The notes beneath the pieces were generated by a model. It saw nothing but the letters and a program-made list of their open reading frames with translations. It had not been told where the DNA came from and did no database searches. Of a DNA stretch of 64,000 nucleotides, positions 20,437-61,337 are shown in pieces (within the stretch, counting starts at the first letter, position 1; every line of letters starts with the position of its first letter). The stretch is from the sequence record OQ828465.1, one strand, 5' to 3'. The translations under genes were made by a program, and so were the position numbers.

Positions 20437-20766
20437 ATGAATATGTCAACTATTTCCACTGGTGTTCTGGTGCTTGGTGGTATTGCATTTGGTTACCATC
20501 TCTTTGATGGGGCACGTTCCATTTATAAAGAATGGTCGATGGAATACATTTACAAAAAGCAAATGGCTAAGGTAAAGGAGCAGCTTACCGAATATGAAAA
20601 CAAGTATGTTGAGATTCCATCAATAGCTGAAATAAATATCTATATCGAACCAGTTCTAACTGAAGCTTTAAATAAACTTGATCGGTATAGTTACAACTGC
20701 TTCTTACATGATGTCGAACAGTACATCGAGTTTATTATTGATAATTATCGTGTAGTTAATCGATAA
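20437..20766 (+). CDS. early membrane-anchored protein; syntenic with phiKZ gp241
   Basis: N-terminal hydrophobic helix then coiled coil; sixth gene after thyA (gp235 by recollection); monocistronic early unit. Confidence 0.65.
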   Translation: MNMSTISTGVLVLGGIAFGYHLFDGARSIYKEWSMEYIYKKQMAKVKEQLTEYENKYVEIPSIAEINIYIEPVLTEALNKLDRYSYNCFLHDVEQYIEFIIDNYRVVNR

Positions 20767-46505: not shown

Positions 46506-46919
46506 ATGGCTAGTCAACTTATCGTAGTTGATTTACAAAATCCTAGAAATAAACATATATACAGTGAACTAACTCATGAACATCCTAGAACAATAACATC
46601 ACATCTAGTTGAAGAATTAGATGATTTTGATGTTCATCAATATTCATACCAAGCGGAGTATAAGTCTGGGATTGATCTTAGATTAATATTCTTTTGGGAT
46701 GGACCATACACTGAACCAAGAGAAGAAGGTTATGAACCAACTGATCTAGAGAAAAAGTGTGTGAAGTTGTGTAGGCAATATGAGGTTGCGATTAACGGGC
46801 AATTATCTGTAGTTGATCACTCTCGGTTCCGGACGGTGTGTACCTTCAGATCAGATAATAGTTTACCAACAACTTTAGACTGGATTCATAAAGAACCCCC
46901 ATCTAAAGAGGTTGTGTAA
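46506..46919 (+). CDS. hypothetical protein
   Basis: 137 aa ORF. Confidence 0.8.
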   Translation: MASQLIVVDLQNPRNKHIYSELTHEHPRTITSHLVEELDDFDVHQYSYQAEYKSGIDLRLIFFWDGPYTEPREEGYEPTDLEKKCVKLCRQYEVAINGQLSVVDHSRFRTVCTFRSDNSLPTTLDWIHKEPPSKEVV

Positions 46920-46948
46920 AAAATAGTAAAAGAAATACACTATTCTAT

Positions 46949-47050
46949 GTAGTTCCTTTACGATTGCTCTTTTATCTTAGTTTCAGTTTTGCTGAAGAAG
47001 TACCAATGAGATACCCTCCCCTGATCGGGGAGGGTTTTTGACATCTAAGA
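46949..47050 (+). ncRNA. candidate late sRNA, 5' end complementary to the nrdB RBS
   Basis: TATGTAG at 46946, U-rich non-coding body, terminator ccctcccc-tgatc-ggggaggg-ttttt. Confidence 0.45.
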
Positions 47051-47060
47051 GGAAAATATA

Positions 47061-47441
47061 ATGTGCAAACAACATCGTGTAGTATCTATGAAAGTTACAT
47101 GCACGCAAGCTCGCTATCCGATCGGTCTGCGCGATCTCGGATTTGATAATGCTGCTGATGCTCGGCAATATCTACTAGATGTCGTTGAGTACAATATGGA
47201 TCGTCTCCACCCGCAACATGCTAATACATTCCAGCTACAAAATCTACAAGACGGGTTCGTAGTATCCTACGATATCGAAAAAGATGGATCCGTTTATCTT
47301 CGGTTAACACTGGCGGCTGTAGCTTATCAATCAATCGATCTTGAGTTGGGGGTTACCGTTAAAGAAAATGAAGGGATCAGTGTTGTAATCAAAAATTGGA
47401 TCAATGGTGATTATACTGCGGGGAACAAATACTTGCAGTAA
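47061..47441 (+). CDS. hypothetical protein
   Basis: 126 aa, GAGGA RBS. Confidence 0.8.
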   Translation: MCKQHRVVSMKVTCTQARYPIGLRDLGFDNAADARQYLLDVVEYNMDRLHPQHANTFQLQNLQDGFVVSYDIEKDGSVYLRLTLAAVAYQSIDLELGVTVKENEGISVVIKNWINGDYTAGNKYLQ

Positions 47442-47449
47442 TACCATAT

Positions 47450-47570
47450 GTAAAGAATACCCAAATCGGGATCTCCCGGACTATCTCCCTTCAGCGTTCC
47501 CGTCCGCAAATGAAGGTGCCGCCGAGATCCCACCTATTGATAATGCCCTCCCTTCGGGGAGGGCTTTATT
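47450..47570 (+). ncRNA. candidate structured GC-rich ncRNA
   Basis: TAC-N14-TATGTA promoter as for tRNAs, nested stems 47468-47531, UUCG terminator 47545-47564. Confidence 0.6.
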
Positions 47571-47607
47571 TCGCTTAAGCCTATTTATTTTATTATAAGG
47601 AGTGAAA

Positions 47608-50998: not shown

Positions 50999-51075
50999 TG
51001 GTGCCGCCACTCCGAATCGAACGGAGGACCTACGCATTACAAGTGCGTTGCTCTACCTAGCTGAGCTATAGCGGC
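50999..51075 (-). tRNA. tRNA-Thr(TGT)
   Basis: cloverleaf GCCGCTA...TGT...GTTCGA...CCA encoded. Confidence 0.95.
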
Positions 51076-51222
51076 GGAATCTTCTACATATAGTGTATAT
51101 GAAAGTATTATTTTATTTATTATAATAAATAAAGTTATATTCAAACATATTTAAACAGTATATCATTAACTTGATATTACTAAAAGTAATATTTTCTATT
51201 AATTGTAAATAGGATACTAAAT

Positions 51223-51360
51223 ATGAATATTGATCCAAAAACTCTTGGCATTATTATTAGCACCACTATTGGCACCGTAGGTGCTCTTATTCTTACGTAT
51301 GGTATTGCGAGAGCAGTACGTTGGAATAATAAACCTGATGTAAAAGATGTAGCAGAGTAA
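51223..51360 (+). CDS. 45 aa membrane microprotein in an inverted early cassette
   Basis: AGGA RBS, TM LGIIISTTIGTVGALILTYGIA; early-type promoter 51141-51166; hairpin 51373-51395. Confidence 0.7.
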   Translation: MNIDPKTLGIIISTTIGTVGALILTYGIARAVRWNNKPDVKDVAE

Positions 51361-51417
51361 GATAACATAAAGCTAGCCCATTAGGGGCTAGCTCTTATAT
51401 TTATTTTTTTATTTGTT

Positions 51418-52047
51418 TTAACTTAGAGTACTATAATAAATAAATTTAGTTAATTCATCTTGTTGCTCTTTGATTATATTATTTTTCGTTTGTTTAACAT
51501 TAATGTAATATTCAATAAATAACCAACGTCTATCATGTTTGGCTAAGTCTTTGAATTCAATTTTCTCAAATCGCCATGACTGTACAGTAGTCCTAATGAG
51601 ATTACCGGATTTATTGATAATATACCCTTGCATGGTGTTAATTTGATCATCGATAGTAGGCGTTGGTAAAAATATCAAATAAACACCATCTGTATTTTTA
51701 GTGTGCATACTTTTTAATTTATACATCATTGGGTTAAAGTATTCATCACTTTTATGATAATCGCTTAATTCTAACACAGCATCAATCATCATTTTAGCGC
51801 TTTCAGTAACACCAACATTTAGTAAATAATCATTAAGCTCTTTTAATGAATTATCTGTAAGTGATGCATCTATGTGTTCTTCACTTATAGGTTCATTATA
51901 AACTAGTTTATTAATAGTTGAATTAACAATATTTAGCCTATCGATATCATAAACTGCTAGTGTTTGTTTACCAACATTTATTTTTAAGTCTTTACCTGAT
52001 TCATTGATAAAATCATTTAAATCTACTTCAGTAAAATGAAAAGCCAT
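51418..52047 (-). CDS. hypothetical protein
   Basis: 209 aa, AAGG RBS. Confidence 0.85.
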   Translation of the reverse strand: MAFHFTEVDLNDFINESGKDLKINVGKQTLAVYDIDRLNIVNSTINKLVYNEPISEEHIDASLTDNSLKELNDYLLNVGVTESAKMMIDAVLELSDYHKSDEYFNPMMYKLKSMHTKNTDGVYLIFLPTPTIDDQINTMQGYIINKSGNLIRTTVQSWRFEKIEFKDLAKHDRRWLFIEYYINVKQTKNNIIKEQQDELTKFIYYSTLS

Positions 52048-52206
52048 TTTTATACACCTTTATGTTTTCCGTAGTGTTAAATTTTATTAACACCCGGTTT
52101 CAAGTTGAGTTATGTGTAGAACTAATCTACAAATAATATTAACTCTATGTATAATTTTACTTATAAATAGACCACTCTATATAGAGGGGTATTAAGTCAT
52201 ATAAAG

Positions 52207-52302
52207 TTATTTTAGTGTGGGTCTAAATACAAACATTACGTCTACTTCATCAGTTGGGTCGACATCATATTCTGTCCCAGTATTATCAATCGCAACCAAC
52301 AT
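52207..52302 (-). CDS. 31 aa acidic microprotein
   Basis: GAGGA 8 nt upstream; MLVAIDNTGTEYDVDPTDEVDVMFVFRPTLK; hairpin 52172-52191 follows. Confidence 0.5.
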   Translation of the reverse strand: MLVAIDNTGTEYDVDPTDEVDVMFVFRPTLK

Positions 52303-52518
52303 TCTCACATTCCTCGGTAAAGGGCTTTATGTGATTTAGATAGGCGAGTGATAAAATACCTAAATGCACTGAGATATTCTCTGATAAATCCTTTACCTTT
52401 ATTAAAATTATCACCTACATGGACCATTCAATCACTTTTATGTAGCTTGATTTCAATCAATTAAAGGGTATAACGAATGTAATGTATTTATACACGAATA
52501 TAGTTATCATAAGCTCAA

Positions 52519-52809
52519 CTACTTGGGGTAAAAGAGTGGACGGAGATCAGTCTCATGGTATTCATCTTTGATATGGGAAAAGTACTTATTGAAATTATCC
52601 ACACTATACGAAGTTCTAAGCCCATTTGGCCAAATCACTAACATGTCACCAACTTCGAATGCCGTGATCATAGCCTCAAAGTCTTTTATGTTTACATGAT
52701 CATTACCAAGTTTCACGAATCGACATGCACGGAAACCACATTCCCAGTCAGACGACATCCATTGACCAGCCTCAGTAATCAGCTTTGCACGAACTAATGT
52801 CTTAGCCAT
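52519..52809 (-). CDS. hypothetical protein
   Basis: 96 aa ORF. Confidence 0.75.
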   Translation of the reverse strand: MAKTLVRAKLITEAGQWMSSDWECGFRACRFVKLGNDHVNIKDFEAMITAFEVGDMLVIWPNGLRTSYSVDNFNKYFSHIKDEYHETDLRPLFYPK

Positions 52810-52987
52810 ACTTGGTACCCCAGTTTATCGTTTTGTCGAGAAGAGCTTGACTAGGTCGTTTATTACGAATCTGATTCTTAATAGACTCATTTAGCTCTTC
52901 CATCGTTTTCCGAACTTTAACTAATCGTTCCTTTTGTTCATTTGTAGGAACACTACTAACTATATCTTGCAATGCTTTAAGTGACAT
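52802..52987 (-). CDS. hypothetical protein
   Basis: 61 aa, AGGG RBS. Confidence 0.7.
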   Translation of the reverse strand: MSLKALQDIVSSVPTNEQKERLVKVRKTMEELNESIKNQIRNKRPSQALLDKTINWGTKYG

Positions 52988-53118
52988 GTCTTTACCCTAT
53001 TTGTATTCAGCTATAAGATTCAACTACTGGGTACTTTTACAAGACGACATAAAGGCAGCATTAGCTGCCTTTATAGTTTACATAGTAGTGAAATATAACT
53101 AAATCTAAAACTATGAAT

Positions 53119-53194
<76 letters not shown>

Positions 53195-53355
53195 AGAATT
53201 ATGGCGATTTTATATTAGAGATGAGTTACTGACAACCTAATATAGATATGTAATAACTACATATTATTACAATCTGAGTATTATTTATTTCTTGTTATGA
53301 CATTATGTAAATAACGTGTAGTTAATCTTATTAGAAACTATCAAAGTTACTAATT

Positions 53356-53868
53356 CTAACTAAAACGAACCACCATTACCTCTGTACCAAAAGTATCTGC
53401 AACCCACTGGTTAAATTCTTTATCAGTGATACCGCGTAGGTTCAGATTAAATGAGGCATTGTCAACAAGAATATATTTTACAGACGATATTAATTCTTCT
53501 TTAATATCTTTTTGAATAGATGATTCCTCAGGTTGATGAATATATTTACGGAGTTGGTGTGTAATTAAACAAGAAACAATATTATCTTTAGCATTCTGGA
53601 ACTTAGCCAGTACAGCCTGTTTAATTTTATCTTCTACAAATACAGCTAGACATTCGCCAGGATGACGATTAGCAAACTCAATCAATGCAGTTGTACTACC
53701 ACATTGCCGACCTACAAATAATCCAACAGTCCTGTATTCACGAATAACAATATGACCAATAGAATTAGATCGATAATTAACCCAGTTCTCATTCGTTTTT
53801 TGAATTAAAGCATCTAGGATATCTTGGTACTTTACAATAGTTCTTACAAACTGATTAGAGTTAGTCAT
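53356..53868 (-). CDS. degenerate P-loop NTPase-like protein
   Basis: GRQCGSTT (Walker A-like, Lys replaced by Ser), YILVDNA (Walker B-like). Confidence 0.6.
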   Translation of the reverse strand: MTNSNQFVRTIVKYQDILDALIQKTNENWVNYRSNSIGHIVIREYRTVGLFVGRQCGSTTALIEFANRHPGECLAVFVEDKIKQAVLAKFQNAKDNIVSCLITHQLRKYIHQPEESSIQKDIKEELISSVKYILVDNASFNLNLRGITDKEFNQWVADTFGTEVMVVRFS

Positions 53869-54100
53869 AATAGACTCCTTTATTACAATGTAGCATAGAT
53901 TCAGTTTTTTAACTGGAATTAAATGCCGATTTTGAAAAGGTGATAAAACCTTTTCTCATCTATAAATGAATTTATAATAGTAACAATGAATATAACCAGG
54001 GGTGGCAAACCCCTGGCATTTAGACACACTCTATAATAAGTTCTACCACCGAGTGTGTTTAGTGGATAGATTTAAGAATACTTTATTATAGTACTCTTAC
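53869..54100 (-). ncRNA. structured 230 nt leader or ncRNA
   Basis: TAC-N14-TATGTA promoter (+1 54100) and at least five hairpins. Confidence 0.45.
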
Positions 54101-54152
54101 ATAATATCATCGTGCCAGTATAATTATCTAAATAGTTATAAATATTATTATT

Positions 54153-55160
54153 TTAATCAATGATTAATGGTGCTAGTTTTACCTGATAGATACCTGATAA
54201 CAATTGGCTTTTCAACATATATGCTCCACCACCAACTGGCATTTTAGATCCACCTACAATGATCATGCTATTATCCGGACCTTTAGCTATAGATGAAATA
54301 TTAAGGAATCCGATACCTAGTTCAAATGGTTCAGCCCATTTCCGGCGCCTAATATTAAAACGTTGTGCAAACATTTTAGTTACACCGCCGACATCAACAG
54401 CGTTAAGGTAATTAAAATAGTCCCCATCTACATAACCATTACCTTGCCAGATTGTTCCTTTATCAGCAGGTATAATCATCCAAGGTGTTTGCTCCCATAT
54501 TAAGGTAGTTGCATTATATCGATAAACTTCAAGATTAGGTATGTTCTTTGTATTATCCCAACCACCAAAATGGTAAAAGTAACCATTATAAAAGAATAAC
54601 TGTTGACCTGAACGAGCACCACCTGAATAGTCTTGCCCGCTAAGCCAAGACTTACTTGATGGTTTTAATCGCATTGCGTTTACGCCAATTGGGTTAACGC
54701 ATAGAATAAGATCATTACCATCTGATGCGGAGGCTGTGCCCCAAAGTGGTACGGGACCACTATATCGCTCAACCCTATTGCCTGTAGCTATATCAAAATG
54801 TTGTATAAAGTTAGATGTTCCCGTACCACCATTACCAGCCGAGTTCCATCCAGTAATACCGCCATAAACAATAAAGTTATTCTTATGTAATGTCCCAAAT
54901 CCTAAAGATACCCCTGGTAAGAATGTTCCAGAAGCAGTTGCACCTATATCGGCAAATGGCGATATGGTAAAACGTCTGAACACAGTTGCAGCTGTTTGTC
55001 CTTCAGTATGATGACCAGATCCAACATACAGTGTATTTCCATCCACATATGACATTGTACCAGCTAACGCTACAGGTAGATCACCTAATTTAATAATTTC
55101 ATTAAATCCAACCAAGGGTAACTCTTCGCCTATATCTGGTGATAATAGTAATTCAAACAT
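54153..55160 (-). CDS. Kelch-like beta-propeller protein, probably virion-associated
   Basis: repeated LYVGSG, FIVYGG, FYHFGG, MIIVGG blades; MFELLL N-terminus. Confidence 0.75.
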   Translation of the reverse strand: MFELLLSPDIGEELPLVGFNEIIKLGDLPVALAGTMSYVDGNTLYVGSGHHTEGQTAATVFRRFTISPFADIGATASGTFLPGVSLGFGTLHKNNFIVYGGITGWNSAGNGGTGTSNFIQHFDIATGNRVERYSGPVPLWGTASASDGNDLILCVNPIGVNAMRLKPSSKSWLSGQDYSGGARSGQQLFFYNGYFYHFGGWDNTKNIPNLEVYRYNATTLIWEQTPWMIIPADKGTIWQGNGYVDGDYFNYLNAVDVGGVTKMFAQRFNIRRRKWAEPFELGIGFLNISSIAKGPDNSMIIVGGSKMPVGGGAYMLKSQLLSGIYQVKLAPLIID

Positions 55161-55244
55161 GAGTGTGCTCTCAAGTAAATCATTTTAATTCATAAGATAA
55201 CCCATGGCAACATAAAAGAGTAGCCGAAGCTACTCTTTAGAATA

Positions 55245-55320
<76 letters not shown>

Positions 55321-55326
55321 ATTAAA

Positions 55327-55403
55327 TGGCGCGCCCAAGGGGACTCGAACCCCTGACCACCCGCGTGACAGGCGGGTATTCTAACCAACTGAACTATGAG
55401 CGC
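55327..55403 (-). tRNA. tRNA-Asp(GTC)
   Basis: 77 nt cloverleaf with CCA. Confidence 0.95.
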
Positions 55404-55455
55404 AAACGTATGGACATGACTTCCTACATAGTATTACATAACCAGTAATATTTTA

Positions 55456-55803
55456 TTACGGGCGATCAGTCCAGTGCTTGAAATAGTTACCATCCTTGGG
55501 ACGATCGTACTTAGCAAGAATATTTTTAAGTTCTTCGCCGGACAACTTAATACTATCGCCTACTGGGCTATCCAGTTCAGGGCAAGGTTCAGTTTTACGT
55601 GTAATGATTAAATTATCAGTCCCATCTTTGAAGATAAAGATAAACTGCGTTTCATTAGCACTAATCTTTTTCTTAACGCAATGCTTTACTTCTGGATGTT
55701 TCTTGTGGATCGCTACAAAAGATTCAACAAGAGTTAGCTTTATAAACTCAGGGCTAATAAATGTGAAATATACAGCGCTCTGCGTTGGGGTTAGATGATC
55801 CAT
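55456..55803 (-). CDS. hypothetical protein
   Basis: 115 aa ORF. Confidence 0.8.
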   Translation of the reverse strand: MDHLTPTQSAVYFTFISPEFIKLTLVESFVAIHKKHPEVKHCVKKKISANETQFIFIFKDGTDNLIITRKTEPCPELDSPVGDSIKLSGEELKNILAKYDRPKDGNYFKHWTDRP

Positions 55804-55805
55804 AT

Positions 55806-56093
55806 TTACTCCGTATGTTTGAGATAGGCTTTAACTGCTTTAAGACCTTTATTAAAGAACATAGCTTCAACATAAGTAATGTTACTTACATCCTCGCCGA
55901 TAAGTTCCCATTTGATGCAACGTGTAACAGCGTTGATTGTAATATCTAATCCGTTTGGGAATAGGGTTACTTCATCGGTCAGGTGAATCCAATCGGGAGC
56001 CTTCGCTCCATTACGTAAACGGGGACTAAAAGTAAGATTATAAAGTGTTTGTAATGGTTGTCTCAATAGTTCTTTTTGTTCTTGATGTTCCAT
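55806..56093 (-). CDS. hypothetical protein
   Basis: ATG 56093 after AGGA. Confidence 0.75.
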   Translation of the reverse strand: MEHQEQKELLRQPLQTLYNLTFSPRLRNGAKAPDWIHLTDEVTLFPNGLDITINAVTRCIKWELIGEDVSNITYVEAMFFNKGLKAVKAYLKHTE

Positions 56094-56101
56094 GTATTTT
56101 C

Positions 56102-56323
56102 CTAGAGACATTTAAAAATATAAATAGAATGGTTATCTCTTTCGGTTATCTTTAGAGTATTCTCATTTCGAATAACTTCAAGAGACTTGTATTTATGTTC
56201 CAGAATATCCAGATGAGAAATACACTGTTCCCTATTTTCAAATAGGATATTACTTTCATTAGTCGAAATGAAACCAAATAATCCAACTTTGATAGATAAT
56301 ACCAACATTATTACTGTATTCAT
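56102..56323 (-). CDS. small exported Cys-pair protein, similar to 14062..14319
   Basis: ATG 56323 after GAGGA; hydrophobic N-terminus, LFENREQCISHL ... IFKCL. Confidence 0.7.
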   Translation of the reverse strand: MNTVIMLVLSIKVGLFGFISTNESNILFENREQCISHLDILEHKYKSLEVIRNENTLKITERDNHSIYIFKCL

Positions 56324-56375
56324 GTTTTCCTCAATGAGACAGTATAAAACCTCCCCCAAGTGGGAGGCTAGTGTA

Positions 56376-56452
56376 TGGTGGGCCCAGCAGGACTTGAACC
56401 TGCGACCAAGCGATTATGAGTCGCCTGCTCTAACCAACTGAGCTATAGGCCC
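56376..56452 (-). tRNA. tRNA with CAT anticodon, most likely tRNA-Ile2 (lysidine type)
   Basis: 77 nt; anticodon arm GGCGACTCATAATCGCT matches recalled E. coli ileX; paired 1:72. Confidence 0.85.
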
Positions 56453-56458
56453 TTTTAT

Positions 56459-56752
56459 TTATTCTGGTAGGAATGTTCCGTCTTTTTGACGGACTAATAC
56501 ACCTGACCATTTGAATGTATTTGTATCACTAACAGGGCACTCTCTAATTACATTGGTTCTAAATGTGCCATGTGGATAGGTTACAGTGAATGTAATATGG
56601 TTATTACAAACATGTAATACAGAAGACTTTGCTTCTGTTAGATAGTGTAAGCCTTGAGCTAATTGAATATTAGTTAATTCAGGGTCACTAAGAATAGCGT
56701 AAAGAGCTGTTCCTATAATTTGATGTTCCCATGATATCCATTTATTATCCAT
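56459..56752 (-). CDS. hypothetical protein between tRNA genes
   Basis: 97 aa ORF. Confidence 0.75.
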   Translation of the reverse strand: MDNKWISWEHQIIGTALYAILSDPELTNIQLAQGLHYLTEAKSSVLHVCNNHITFTVTYPHGTFRTNVIRECPVSDTNTFKWSGVLVRQKDGTFLPE

Positions 56753-56773
56753 CCTATTTACCTATTATTAAAA

Positions 56774-56849
56774 TGGTCGGAGTGGGGAGACTCGAACTCC
56801 CGACATCCTGCTCCCAAAGCAGGCGCGCTACCAACTGCGCTACACTCCG
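56774..56849 (-). tRNA. tRNA-Pro(TGG)
   Basis: 76 nt cloverleaf with CCA. Confidence 0.95.
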
Positions 56850-56858
56850 TATTTAAAT

Positions 56859-56943
56859 TGGTGCCCGAAGTCGGATTCGAACCGACAAGACCGTAGCCGG
56901 AAGATTTTAAGTCTTCTGTGTTTACCAATTTCACCATTCGGGC
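56859..56943 (-). tRNA. tRNA-Leu(TAA)
   Basis: 85 nt with long variable arm and CCA. Confidence 0.95.
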
Positions 56944-60107: not shown

Positions 60108-61267
60108 AAGAAGTCAACCTCAAATTCTTCTTCTTCACCAACATCATTTACAACGTTGACCATGTAATCAGGCTTCTCTTCTTCCTGAGGAGATGCTTGG
60201 GTTGATGAAATATCTAGGTAGTCTTCCATATAAAGAAGTGGGTTCTTCTCTGGCCAAACAAAATCAAATCCAGCTGATTCTTTAAACTCCACTTGATACT
60301 GTTCTACAACATCATTTTCAATACTTAGGAATGTTGCTGCGGCATTAGCATTGAAAAGTACCCAGTTAATAAGTTTAGTCGCATTAACACCAGTTAGTTC
60401 ACGACCTTCAGAGAATAGATAATTAACCCAGGTAACTTCAGTCTTTACAATTTCCCATAGTAGTTCAATGATTTTATCTTTACATTGACTGTAAGCGAGT
60501 TTACCGCGTTCAGTTGCCAGTAGTGCACGAATAACTTCTTGTCCATATTGTGCATGGATTTCGAATTCGTCTTGGGCAATTTTCTTAACAGCGGCTGCAA
60601 TTTGCTGGAATGCACCAGTACGACCAATAGCAAAGGTTACTGCAAAGGATGCCATGAACTGGATACGTTCTAGGAAATATAGAGCGATGAAGAACATGAA
60701 TACTTTATTGTAAAGTTCTTGATCATTGGGTACCTGATTAAGAGCATACGCATGAACTGCGTCATGTGCTTCACCCATAGTGCGGGCTACTGCAACCATT
60801 CGTTCTTGTGCTTCTTCTACCCTAAGAATTTCGTCTAGAATAACTTTAGGATCTTTAAAGCTATTACGTACAATTTCAGAATAAGTTAAAGCATGTACGT
60901 CTTCATTATCATTAATACGTACATATCCCGCCCATACTCGTGAATCTGTCATGACAGGTGATAGAATATTAACAATGGAACGACTGGCTACAGAGTCAGC
61001 TTCCCATTGCCAGGCCAGTGTCTTAATCATCATGTCATAAGTTGATTTATCACACGTTTCAAATTCTACTAGACAAGTGGAAAAGTCAAATTCTAGCTCA
61101 TCCCAATCAAGCATCTTTAGACGCTTATATAGCTCCCACATTTTAGGATAATGAGTGTGGATTGAATCTAGTAGACCTGGATCATCTCCAAGAATAATTT
61201 CCGGTAGATGATAATCACTCTTAGCAACATTGAAGATTTTCTTTGGTAGTTGAGATTTAGTAGACAT
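60104..61267 (-). CDS. nrdB: ribonucleotide reductase class Ia beta subunit
   Basis: DSVASR, NEDVHALTYS (radical Tyr), LERIQFMASF, QDEFEIH. Confidence 0.96.
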   Translation of the reverse strand: MSTKSQLPKKIFNVAKSDYHLPEIILGDDPGLLDSIHTHYPKMWELYKRLKMLDWDELEFDFSTCLVEFETCDKSTYDMMIKTLAWQWEADSVASRSIVNILSPVMTDSRVWAGYVRINDNEDVHALTYSEIVRNSFKDPKVILDEILRVEEAQERMVAVARTMGEAHDAVHAYALNQVPNDQELYNKVFMFFIALYFLERIQFMASFAVTFAIGRTGAFQQIAAAVKKIAQDEFEIHAQYGQEVIRALLATERGKLAYSQCKDKIIELLWEIVKTEVTWVNYLFSEGRELTGVNATKLINWVLFNANAAATFLSIENDVVEQYQVEFKESAGFDFVWPEKNPLLYMEDYLDISSTQASPQEEEKPDYMVNVVNDVGEEEEFEVDFL

Positions 61268-61337
61268 ATCAGTTCCTTTACAATTTAAAAATATTTCTTA
61301 CAATAAATAATAGAGGTTAGTATAAATTGGGAATAAC

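Follow-up and report, generated by a model that had tools for sequence, protein, structure and literature searches.

Genetic neighborhood and transcription of the locus

The DNA analyzed here (the window, 64,000 nt in full) covers the last 64 kb, at the right end, of the PA_ZH1 record and belongs to a Pseudomonas phage of the phiKZ type. Over the region, identity is 100% with Pseudomonas phages PaZh_1, PA_ZH1, and KEN19 and 98.7% with phiKZ. The homologs of PHIKZ287.1 and PHIKZ288 flank a gap of 141 nt, which has the same sequence in phiKZ, with no difference. Proteins gp287, gp287.1, gp288, and gp289 carry no Pfam domain, and their PHROGs matches are all of unknown function. The features of the gap, its neighbors, and a distant site proposed as its pairing partner are as follows.

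46506-46919: PHIKZ287.1 homolog, the 5' neighbor of the gap
46920-47060: intergenic gap, 141 nt, between the PHIKZ287.1 and PHIKZ288 homologs
46920-46948, plus strand: promoter region, ACACTAT...TATG up to the start site, with TATG at 46946-46949
46949-47039, plus strand: small noncoding RNA, terminated form, 89 to 91 nt, published as the PHIKZ288 5'UTR-derived ncRNA candidate
46950-46965, plus strand: proposed seed, UAGUUCCUUUACGAUU, which includes the anti-Shine-Dalgarno-like UUCCUUUA (46953-46960)
46965-46972, plus strand: boxA-like core, UGCUCUUU, the same as nucleotides 1 to 8 of the E. coli rrn boxA
46981-46997, plus strand: small internal hairpin, UUUCAGU-UUU-GCUGAAG, in both the minimum-free-energy and centroid folds
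47013-47039, plus strand: intrinsic terminator T118, a 9-bp G+C-rich stem (47013-47021/47027-47035) with loop UGAUC and a U-run to 47039
47047-47063, plus strand: Shine-Dalgarno AAGAGGAAAA and ATG (47061) of gene 288, served by the 621-nt read-through form (TU197)
47061-47441: PHIKZ288 homolog, the 3' neighbor of the gap
61270-61285, minus strand: proposed target in the nrdB (PHIKZ305) 5' UTR, spanning the Shine-Dalgarno AAGGAA and ending 2 nt before the ATG at 61267

A sequence-only reading of this DNA had proposed that the gap holds a noncoding unit of its own, set between a TATG-containing motif and a terminator. Published transcript maps of phiKZ bear this out. ONT-cappable-seq (Putzeys et al., microLife 2024; bioRxiv 10.1101/2023.10.13.562163) places start site P129 at phiKZ position 262671 on the plus strand, which is window position 46950, and the intrinsic terminator T118 (-17.8 kcal/mol) at phiKZ 262760, or approximately window position 47039. 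The same study reports TU196, which is 89 nt long and gene-free, and TU197, a 621-nt read-through unit carrying PHIKZ288. Transcription in phiKZ commonly terminates prematurely within 5' UTRs, and the RNA at 262671-262760 is among the 17 "5'UTR-derived" ncRNA candidates given in Table S7 of that work. The unit is a discrete small primary transcript of ~90 nt: transcription starts at 46949/46950 from a phage promoter ending in TATG, and while some transcripts end at the terminator at 47013-47039, others read into gene 288.

The timing of this promoter is less straightforward. The late motif of the phiKZ nvRNAP is TATG with G as +1, and the TATG of the unit carries this signature, yet P129 was filed as "early" by the published motif classing (Putzeys et al. 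2024); it is missing from earlier phiKZ promoter lists.

The predicted fold of the small RNA has an energy of -28 kcal/mol (z = -3.3 relative to shuffles). In the predicted fold, a weak 5' hairpin (loop CCUUUAC) takes up part of the seed, and the first four seed bases are paired. An Rfam scan of the window returned seven tRNAs only and no family at the RNA locus. We also note an 11-codon open reading frame, MRYPPLIGEGF (window 47007-47042, plus strand), which crosses the terminator hairpin and has only a weak GAAGAAG ahead of it; separately, an ATG-TAG lies right at the start site (46947-46952).

The transcript itself has been published, whereas its conservation across genera and its boxA core, described below, appear to be new, as we found no mention of either in the literature searched. 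The published entry proposes no motif, target, or family for the RNA (Putzeys et al. 2024).

Conservation of the gap within Phikzvirus

The 46-nt 5' segment of the RNA is identical in all Phikzvirus genomes compared (46/46). Relative to phage T2P, the intergenic region shows 0 differences, whereas the rate is 3.4 per 100 nt in gp287.1 and 18.1 in gp288, which argues that the gap is under constraint. The gene 288 protein (47061-47441, compared with the T2P locus) is just 81% identical in the group formed by T2P, U5, U1B, and phi9_PA9. With the gap identical and gene 288 diverged in the T2P group, a sharp divergence boundary falls directly after the RNA unit.

A related RNA follows gp287.1 in other jumbo phages

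No homologs of gp288 were found outside Phikzvirus, which makes this protein unusable as an anchor for locating relatives. Homologs of gp287/gp287.1, with 22 to 56% identity, are present in PA1C, HPP-Temi, phiPA3, RVTF4, D6, Psa21, and several IMG/VR jumbo-phage contigs; gp287.1 itself is 22 to 41% identical in the six named phages. In each relative, gp287.1 is followed by a 170- to 200-nt noncoding unit consisting of a TATG-type promoter, a 5' block, hairpins, and an intrinsic terminator, after which comes a gene that starts 22 to 41 nt past the terminator in the seven annotated lineages. The (G/A)YAC(T/A)A..TATG arrangement of the promoter likewise occurs upstream of this RNA in six further lineages. 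The genes downstream have no BLASTP similarity between lineages, indicating that the RNA has no fixed link to gene 288 or to any one conserved gene.

Judged by alignment, the 5' block is conserved across genera. The phiKZ-type block, UUCCUUUACGAUUGCUCUUUUA, matches that of PA1C, AUCCUUUACGAUAGCUCUUUUA, at 20 of 22 positions, and CCUUUACGAU is common to the window, PA1C, HPP-Temi, phiPA3, and an IMG/VR locus (L024). This shared stretch is absent from Phabio/L035, where UCCUUU, the anti-Shine-Dalgarno part of the block, is wholly missing. When an nhmmer profile of twelve relatives was run against the whole genome, the top match was 46945-46973, with a genome-wide E value of 0.21 that becomes ~5e-5 when rescaled to the syntenic gap alone. 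The window locus thus fits the layout of the family in its synteny, TATG promoter, GCUCUUU-containing 5' block, and terminal intrinsic terminator.

Three elements make up the consensus fold of the family, namely, a T-loop-type hairpin, a second hairpin whose loop is conserved, and the terminator; the 5' block is left unpaired. Compensatory changes are seen at 13 of the 18 predicted pairs and also in the terminator stem across the family. The central domain, made up of the T-loop-type hairpin and hairpin H3 (loop AUCGNC), is present with compensatory changes in the 12 other members. The Phikzvirus RNA is a short form that has neither the T-loop hairpin nor H3 nor hairpin H4, and its internal hairpin at 46981-46997 sits where the relatives carry a 100-nt structured domain.

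Structured RNAs of 140 to 200 nt in the relatives (PA1C, HPP-Temi, phiPA3, RVTF4, D6, Psa21, Phabio, and IMG/VR contigs) lie at L004:1347-1525, L005:1332-1533, L006:1364-1535, L008:961-1136, L009:964-1134, L035:5073-5215, and other loci. Their parts are boxA, the T-loop-type hairpin (GGGUUAGAUUCCC), the hairpin with the conserved loop CAUCGACUGA, and the terminator, and they have no Rfam or tRNA match. ARAGORN reported no tRNA or tmRNA at L001 or L004 to L006, and permissive Rfam scans of the relatives' loci and of the corresponding 201phi2-1 gap gave no match. A tRNA-like reading was set aside: PA1C has T-arm- and D-arm-like pieces but no acceptor stem, and the arrangement differs in the D6 clade. 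Pattern scans of IMG/VR with the 5' block or with the T-loop/H3 combination returned mostly chance matches in coding sequence.

In 201phi2-1, the equivalent gap follows gp424 (L150:2650-3098), is 449 nt long, and is richer in G+C. It contains no canonical boxA, only a degenerate CACUGCUCUGG, together with a T-loop-like hairpin. This gap may hold a larger, diverged RNA.

The invariant core of the 5' block matches boxA

The longest invariant block of the 13-member alignment is GCUCUUU, present in all 13 members and corresponding to positions 2 to 8 of the boxA-like core. In sequence, this invariant core is identical to boxA. The E. coli rrn boxA is UGCUCUUUA and that of lambda is CGCUCUUA (core CGCUCUU-A), and in the NusB-NusE crystal structure, nucleotides 1 to 8 of boxA are contacted and no others. 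Position 1 of the core varies among U, C, and A in the phage family and likewise varies between the rrn and lambda elements.

The match extends further in the relatives than in the window. Nine relatives carry GCUCUUUAACA, an exact instance of the gammaproteobacterial boxA consensus GYTCTTTAANA, and PA1C and HPP-Temi have one mismatch. The relatives with the full GCUCUUUAACAA agree with this consensus, with the E. coli rrsH leader, the sequence of which was inspected directly for this comparison, and with the rrn leaders of Pseudomonas; those of the host read (U/C)GCUCUUUAACA. In RVTF4, CAC-GCUCUUUAACAAUUUAUC can be set beside CAC-UGCUCUUUAACAAUUUAUC of the E. coli rrn leader. The corresponding window sequence, GCTCTTTTATC, departs from the consensus at two positions, and its tail has drifted to UUAUCU in place of AACAA. 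A more extended mimicry of the host rrn leader was considered and rejected, as the shared part is the ~12-nt boxA only and the flanks differ.

Several points bear on how this likeness is to be read. The bare 8-mer TGCTCTTT occurs five times in the window, where 2.7 occurrences are expected; with an 8-mer that is not rare and two mismatches to the consensus, the boxA reading rests on homology with the relatives and not on the window sequence alone. Since boxA was recognized after the alignment had been seen, any significance given to it is post hoc. A pattern that required boxA supplied six of the 13 members, and a boxA-free pattern (T-loop plus second hairpin) recovered boxA-positive members only. 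Across the family, the motif lies 17 to ~42 nt from the start site, and this variability favors an element acting at the RNA level over a promoter element.

The family consensus fold leaves boxA unpaired. In the short form of the window, U17 to C19 fall in the weak predicted 5' hairpin, with an unpaired probability of 0.2 to 0.4, and the remainder of the core is mostly open. There are nine NGCTCTTTNA sites in the genome, and only the copy at the RNA locus lies at a mapped RNA 5' end. No report linking boxA to phiKZ or to jumbo phages was found in the literature searched.

The sole exact boxA consensus in the window (GTTCTTTAATA) is elsewhere, at 55850-55860 on the minus strand, inside an open reading frame at 55806-56093. 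This is the strand of the tRNA cluster, seven genes of which occupy window 51002-56943.

A proposed boxA-bearing leader or small RNA

Our best explanation, to which we would give somewhat less than an even chance, is that the locus encodes a conserved boxA-bearing leader or small RNA and that its pairing with nrdB, treated in the next section, is incidental. The unit would be the Phikzvirus version of a conserved RNA or leader that follows the gp287-gp287.1 pair in Pseudomonas jumbo phages, and its functional part would be the largely unpaired, pyrimidine-rich 5' block. The core may serve as a protein-binding site, with host NusB-S10 or an analogous phage protein as the most plausible ligand. 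Two consequences can be envisaged. In one, the core would work in cis like a nut element and modulate termination and read-through at the terminator that follows it; in the other, the short RNA, if abundant, would titrate NusB-S10 in the cytoplasm.

Development of phiKZ is independent of the host RNA polymerase and uses enzymes of its own, so the textbook tethering of Nus factors cannot simply be assumed. A bolder proposal, which we regard as rather unlikely, is that nucleus-forming jumbo phages with their own polymerases keep an RNA with a host rrn-type boxA which either sponges NusB-S10 or recruits Nus-type factors. As a sponge, it would hinder host ribosomal RNA synthesis or divert S10; through recruitment, it would let a noncanonical phage polymerase read through terminators. 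Either form would be a new use of boxA.

The strongest competitor is that the element acts in cis only, as a leader of gene 288, with the terminator attenuating transcription, UUCCUUU masking the Shine-Dalgarno in the read-through form, and the short RNA a functionless by-product. The mapping of both terminated and read-through forms fits this reading, as do the 22 to 41 nt between terminator and gene in the seven annotated lineages and the frequency of premature 5' UTR termination among the phiKZ transcripts. Moreover, a fold of the read-through leader exists in which UUCCUUU is paired with AGAGGAA. However, this duplex is only 7 bp long (-9.6 kcal/mol) and gives way to other pairings once the fold takes in more of the downstream sequence. 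The RNA is conserved while the gene behind it differs from lineage to lineage, and a leader dedicated to gene 288 leaves unexplained both the invariant GCUCUUU and the conserved structured domain of the relatives. We consider a purely cis-acting leader possible, though not probable.

Alternatively, the window RNA could be a decayed remnant of an ancestral 170- to 200-nt RNA gene that has lost its central domain, with the promoter and terminator left to punctuate transcription between 287.1 and 288. The T-loop hairpin, H3, and H4, found in all other lineages, are indeed missing here, and the drift of the boxA tail is in keeping with decay. Yet the gap shows no difference where the flanking genes of the compared genomes differ by 3 to 18 per 100 nt, 46 genomes share an identical 5' block that PA1C nearly matches, and the 8-nt core is intact, all of which makes decay quite unlikely.

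Complementarity to the nrdB leader

The sequence-only reading assigned the RNA a different role, in which its 5' end covers the ribosome-binding site of nrdB in trans and shuts off ribonucleotide reductase. The pairing on which this was built is confirmed: UAGUUCCUUUACGAUU (46950-46965) and AAUUGUAAAGGAACUG (61285-61270, minus strand) form 16 uninterrupted pairs over the Shine-Dalgarno, 14 Watson-Crick and 2 G-U, with an energy of -18.9 kcal/mol. The gene after the target encodes the ribonucleotide reductase small chain (PF00268, E = 2e-25), and the large chain lies just upstream. Start site P146 of the nrdB mRNA maps to phiKZ 277797 on the minus strand, approximately window position 61300, at a "middle" promoter seen also by dRNA-seq (bioRxiv 10.1101/2023.10.13.562163), which puts the target site within the 33-nt 5' UTR.

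To rank this match, genes were called over the whole PA_ZH1 genome (L049 to L053 plus the window), yielding 386 initiation regions from -30 to +10. The nrdB region is first of the 386 for the 27-nt 5' end of the RNA (RNAduplex energy of -20.8, followed by -19.4 and -18.9). When dinucleotide shuffles of the 27-mer were run against the same regions, an energy of -20.8 or better was reached in 31% of trials and an uninterrupted run of 16 or more in 8.8%, but at least 14 Watson-Crick pairs within one run in just 1.8%. Across the whole genome on both strands, a run as good as that of nrdB is attained by 34 to 41% of shuffles, making it typical, and in an unrestricted energy scan of the genome, nrdB is tenth. 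With the nrdB leader alone as the target, 0/1000 shuffles equaled the energy, in what is a post hoc test. The match thus exists and is well positioned, but its statistical weight is modest, even before allowing for choice among many gaps. The earlier reading itself conceded that an AT-rich ribosome-binding site might be matched by chance, and the match lies within reach of composition-matched shuffles (P = 0.018 to 0.31).

The seed is pyrimidine-rich and resembles an anti-Shine-Dalgarno sequence (UUCCUUU), so that generic pairing is to be expected with the 17 of 386 leaders in which AAAGGAA is present. As such sequences meet good-looking partners at ribosome-binding sites by chance, the prediction of nrdB as a target is to be treated with caution.

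Both pairing sites are invariant within the genus, the 16-nt target being identical in 47 Phikzvirus genomes, with a T>C change at -1 in 13 as the sole nearby difference, and hence there is no covariation to read at that level. The comparison was accordingly made across lineages: the 5' block of each was matched to its own nrdB leader, which was ranked among the annotated initiation regions of the loci examined. The leader ranks 10/26 in PA1C, 18/18 in phiPA3, 3/18 in Psa21, 5/6 in D6, and 11/16 in RVTF4, all of which keep the 5' block; the Psa21 match is fair (P = 0.01). Thus, across five other jumbo-phage lineages, presence of the RNA is not accompanied by preferred pairing with nrdB. Independent divergence of the two sites in relatives had been named beforehand as the outcome that would count against nrdB, and this is what is seen at the family level, with ranks from 3/18 to 18/18. 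Complementarity between seed and target that both exceeds chance and is conserved in relatives was not found. It is possible that an nrdB interaction arose solely within the genus Phikzvirus.

As a target, then, nrdB is not supported: shuffles do as well (P = 0.02 to 0.3), and five lineages keep the 5' block with no preference for nrdB. A short RNA that blocks the nrdB ribosome-binding site in trans, perhaps with Hfq and perhaps at other AAAGGAA sites, would accord with the terminator and U-tail of the transcript, the genus-wide invariance of both sites, the first rank of nrdB, and the match in Psa21, but given the ordinary statistics, the ranks in the other four lineages, the absence of the anti-Shine-Dalgarno part from Phabio/L035, and the pairing of the first four seed bases in the predicted fold, we hold it to be very unlikely. 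With a boxA core within it, the conservation of the 5' block is explicable otherwise. If the RNA is a boxA-bearing leader, as we prefer, the 16-nt match would be a by-product, in which a few A-U and G-U pairs lengthen an anti-Shine-Dalgarno-like stretch, and not the reason why the sequence has been kept.

Three other pairings or copies were encountered. A 19-bp run with 20565-20583 was rejected because it falls at an internal codon position with no start there. The 5' 32-mer of the RNA can form a gapped duplex of ~23 bp (-29.6 kcal/mol) with a coding site at L050 ~3326 (PA_ZH1 +53226), and a near-copy of the 5' block (TTCTTTACGATT..TGCTCTTTTA) lies at L049 26220-26290 on the minus strand, antisense to codons 16 to 27 of PAZH1_41. 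The L050 duplex site and the L049 near-copy are probably due to chance.

Comparison with known systems

In its 8-nt core UGCUCUUU, the window RNA is identical to rrn-type boxA/nut elements such as those of the E. coli and Pseudomonas rrn leaders, lambda nutL/nutR, and the suhB 5' UTR, and like the rrn leaders, the phage relatives carry the full GCUCUUUAACAA(UUUAUC). The arrangement is also similar, in that the phage motif lies near the 5' end of the transcript, ahead of a terminator and a gene, and terminated and read-through products coexist. There are differences as well. Unlike transcripts with the rrn or lambda boxA, the phage RNA is made by phage-encoded noncanonical polymerases, and the host enzyme is not needed. 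It has neither boxB nor boxC, and no N-like protein is known. Finally, the complexes formed at rrn boxA mainly counter Rho, whereas the phage terminator is intrinsic; the likeness to rrn boxA is one of sequence.

With Hfq-type small RNAs that occlude ribosome-binding sites, the window RNA shares a short primary transcript, a 5' seed, an intrinsic terminator with a U-tail, and complementarity to a Shine-Dalgarno. Unlike them, it shows no conserved target pairing in relatives, its seed is partly structured, and its match is statistically ordinary.

Dozens of jumbo-phage small RNAs have been catalogued, and we know of none with a known function. Counterparts of the window RNA occur in five or more other lineages, and the invariant core equals in sequence a well-understood protein-binding signal. 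If the motif works, phages regarded as not depending on host transcription would be tied to elongation or ribosomal factors of the host, and this would bear on the suspicion, raised earlier for 201phi2-1, of antitermination in these phages. In having counterparts in other jumbo-phage genera, the window RNA resembles sRNA005 of 201phi2-1.

The RNA also resembles the other phiKZ 5'UTR-derived ncRNA candidates (Putzeys et al. 2024, Table S7) in arising through premature termination close behind a promoter. Another of these published candidates occupies the very next gap, upstream of PHIKZ289 (window 47451-47571, plus strand; phiKZ 263172-263292, 120 nt, terminator T119). It has a TATG start at approximately 47448-47451 and a terminator at 47545-47564, and it overlaps a 64-amino-acid open reading frame annotated in some records.
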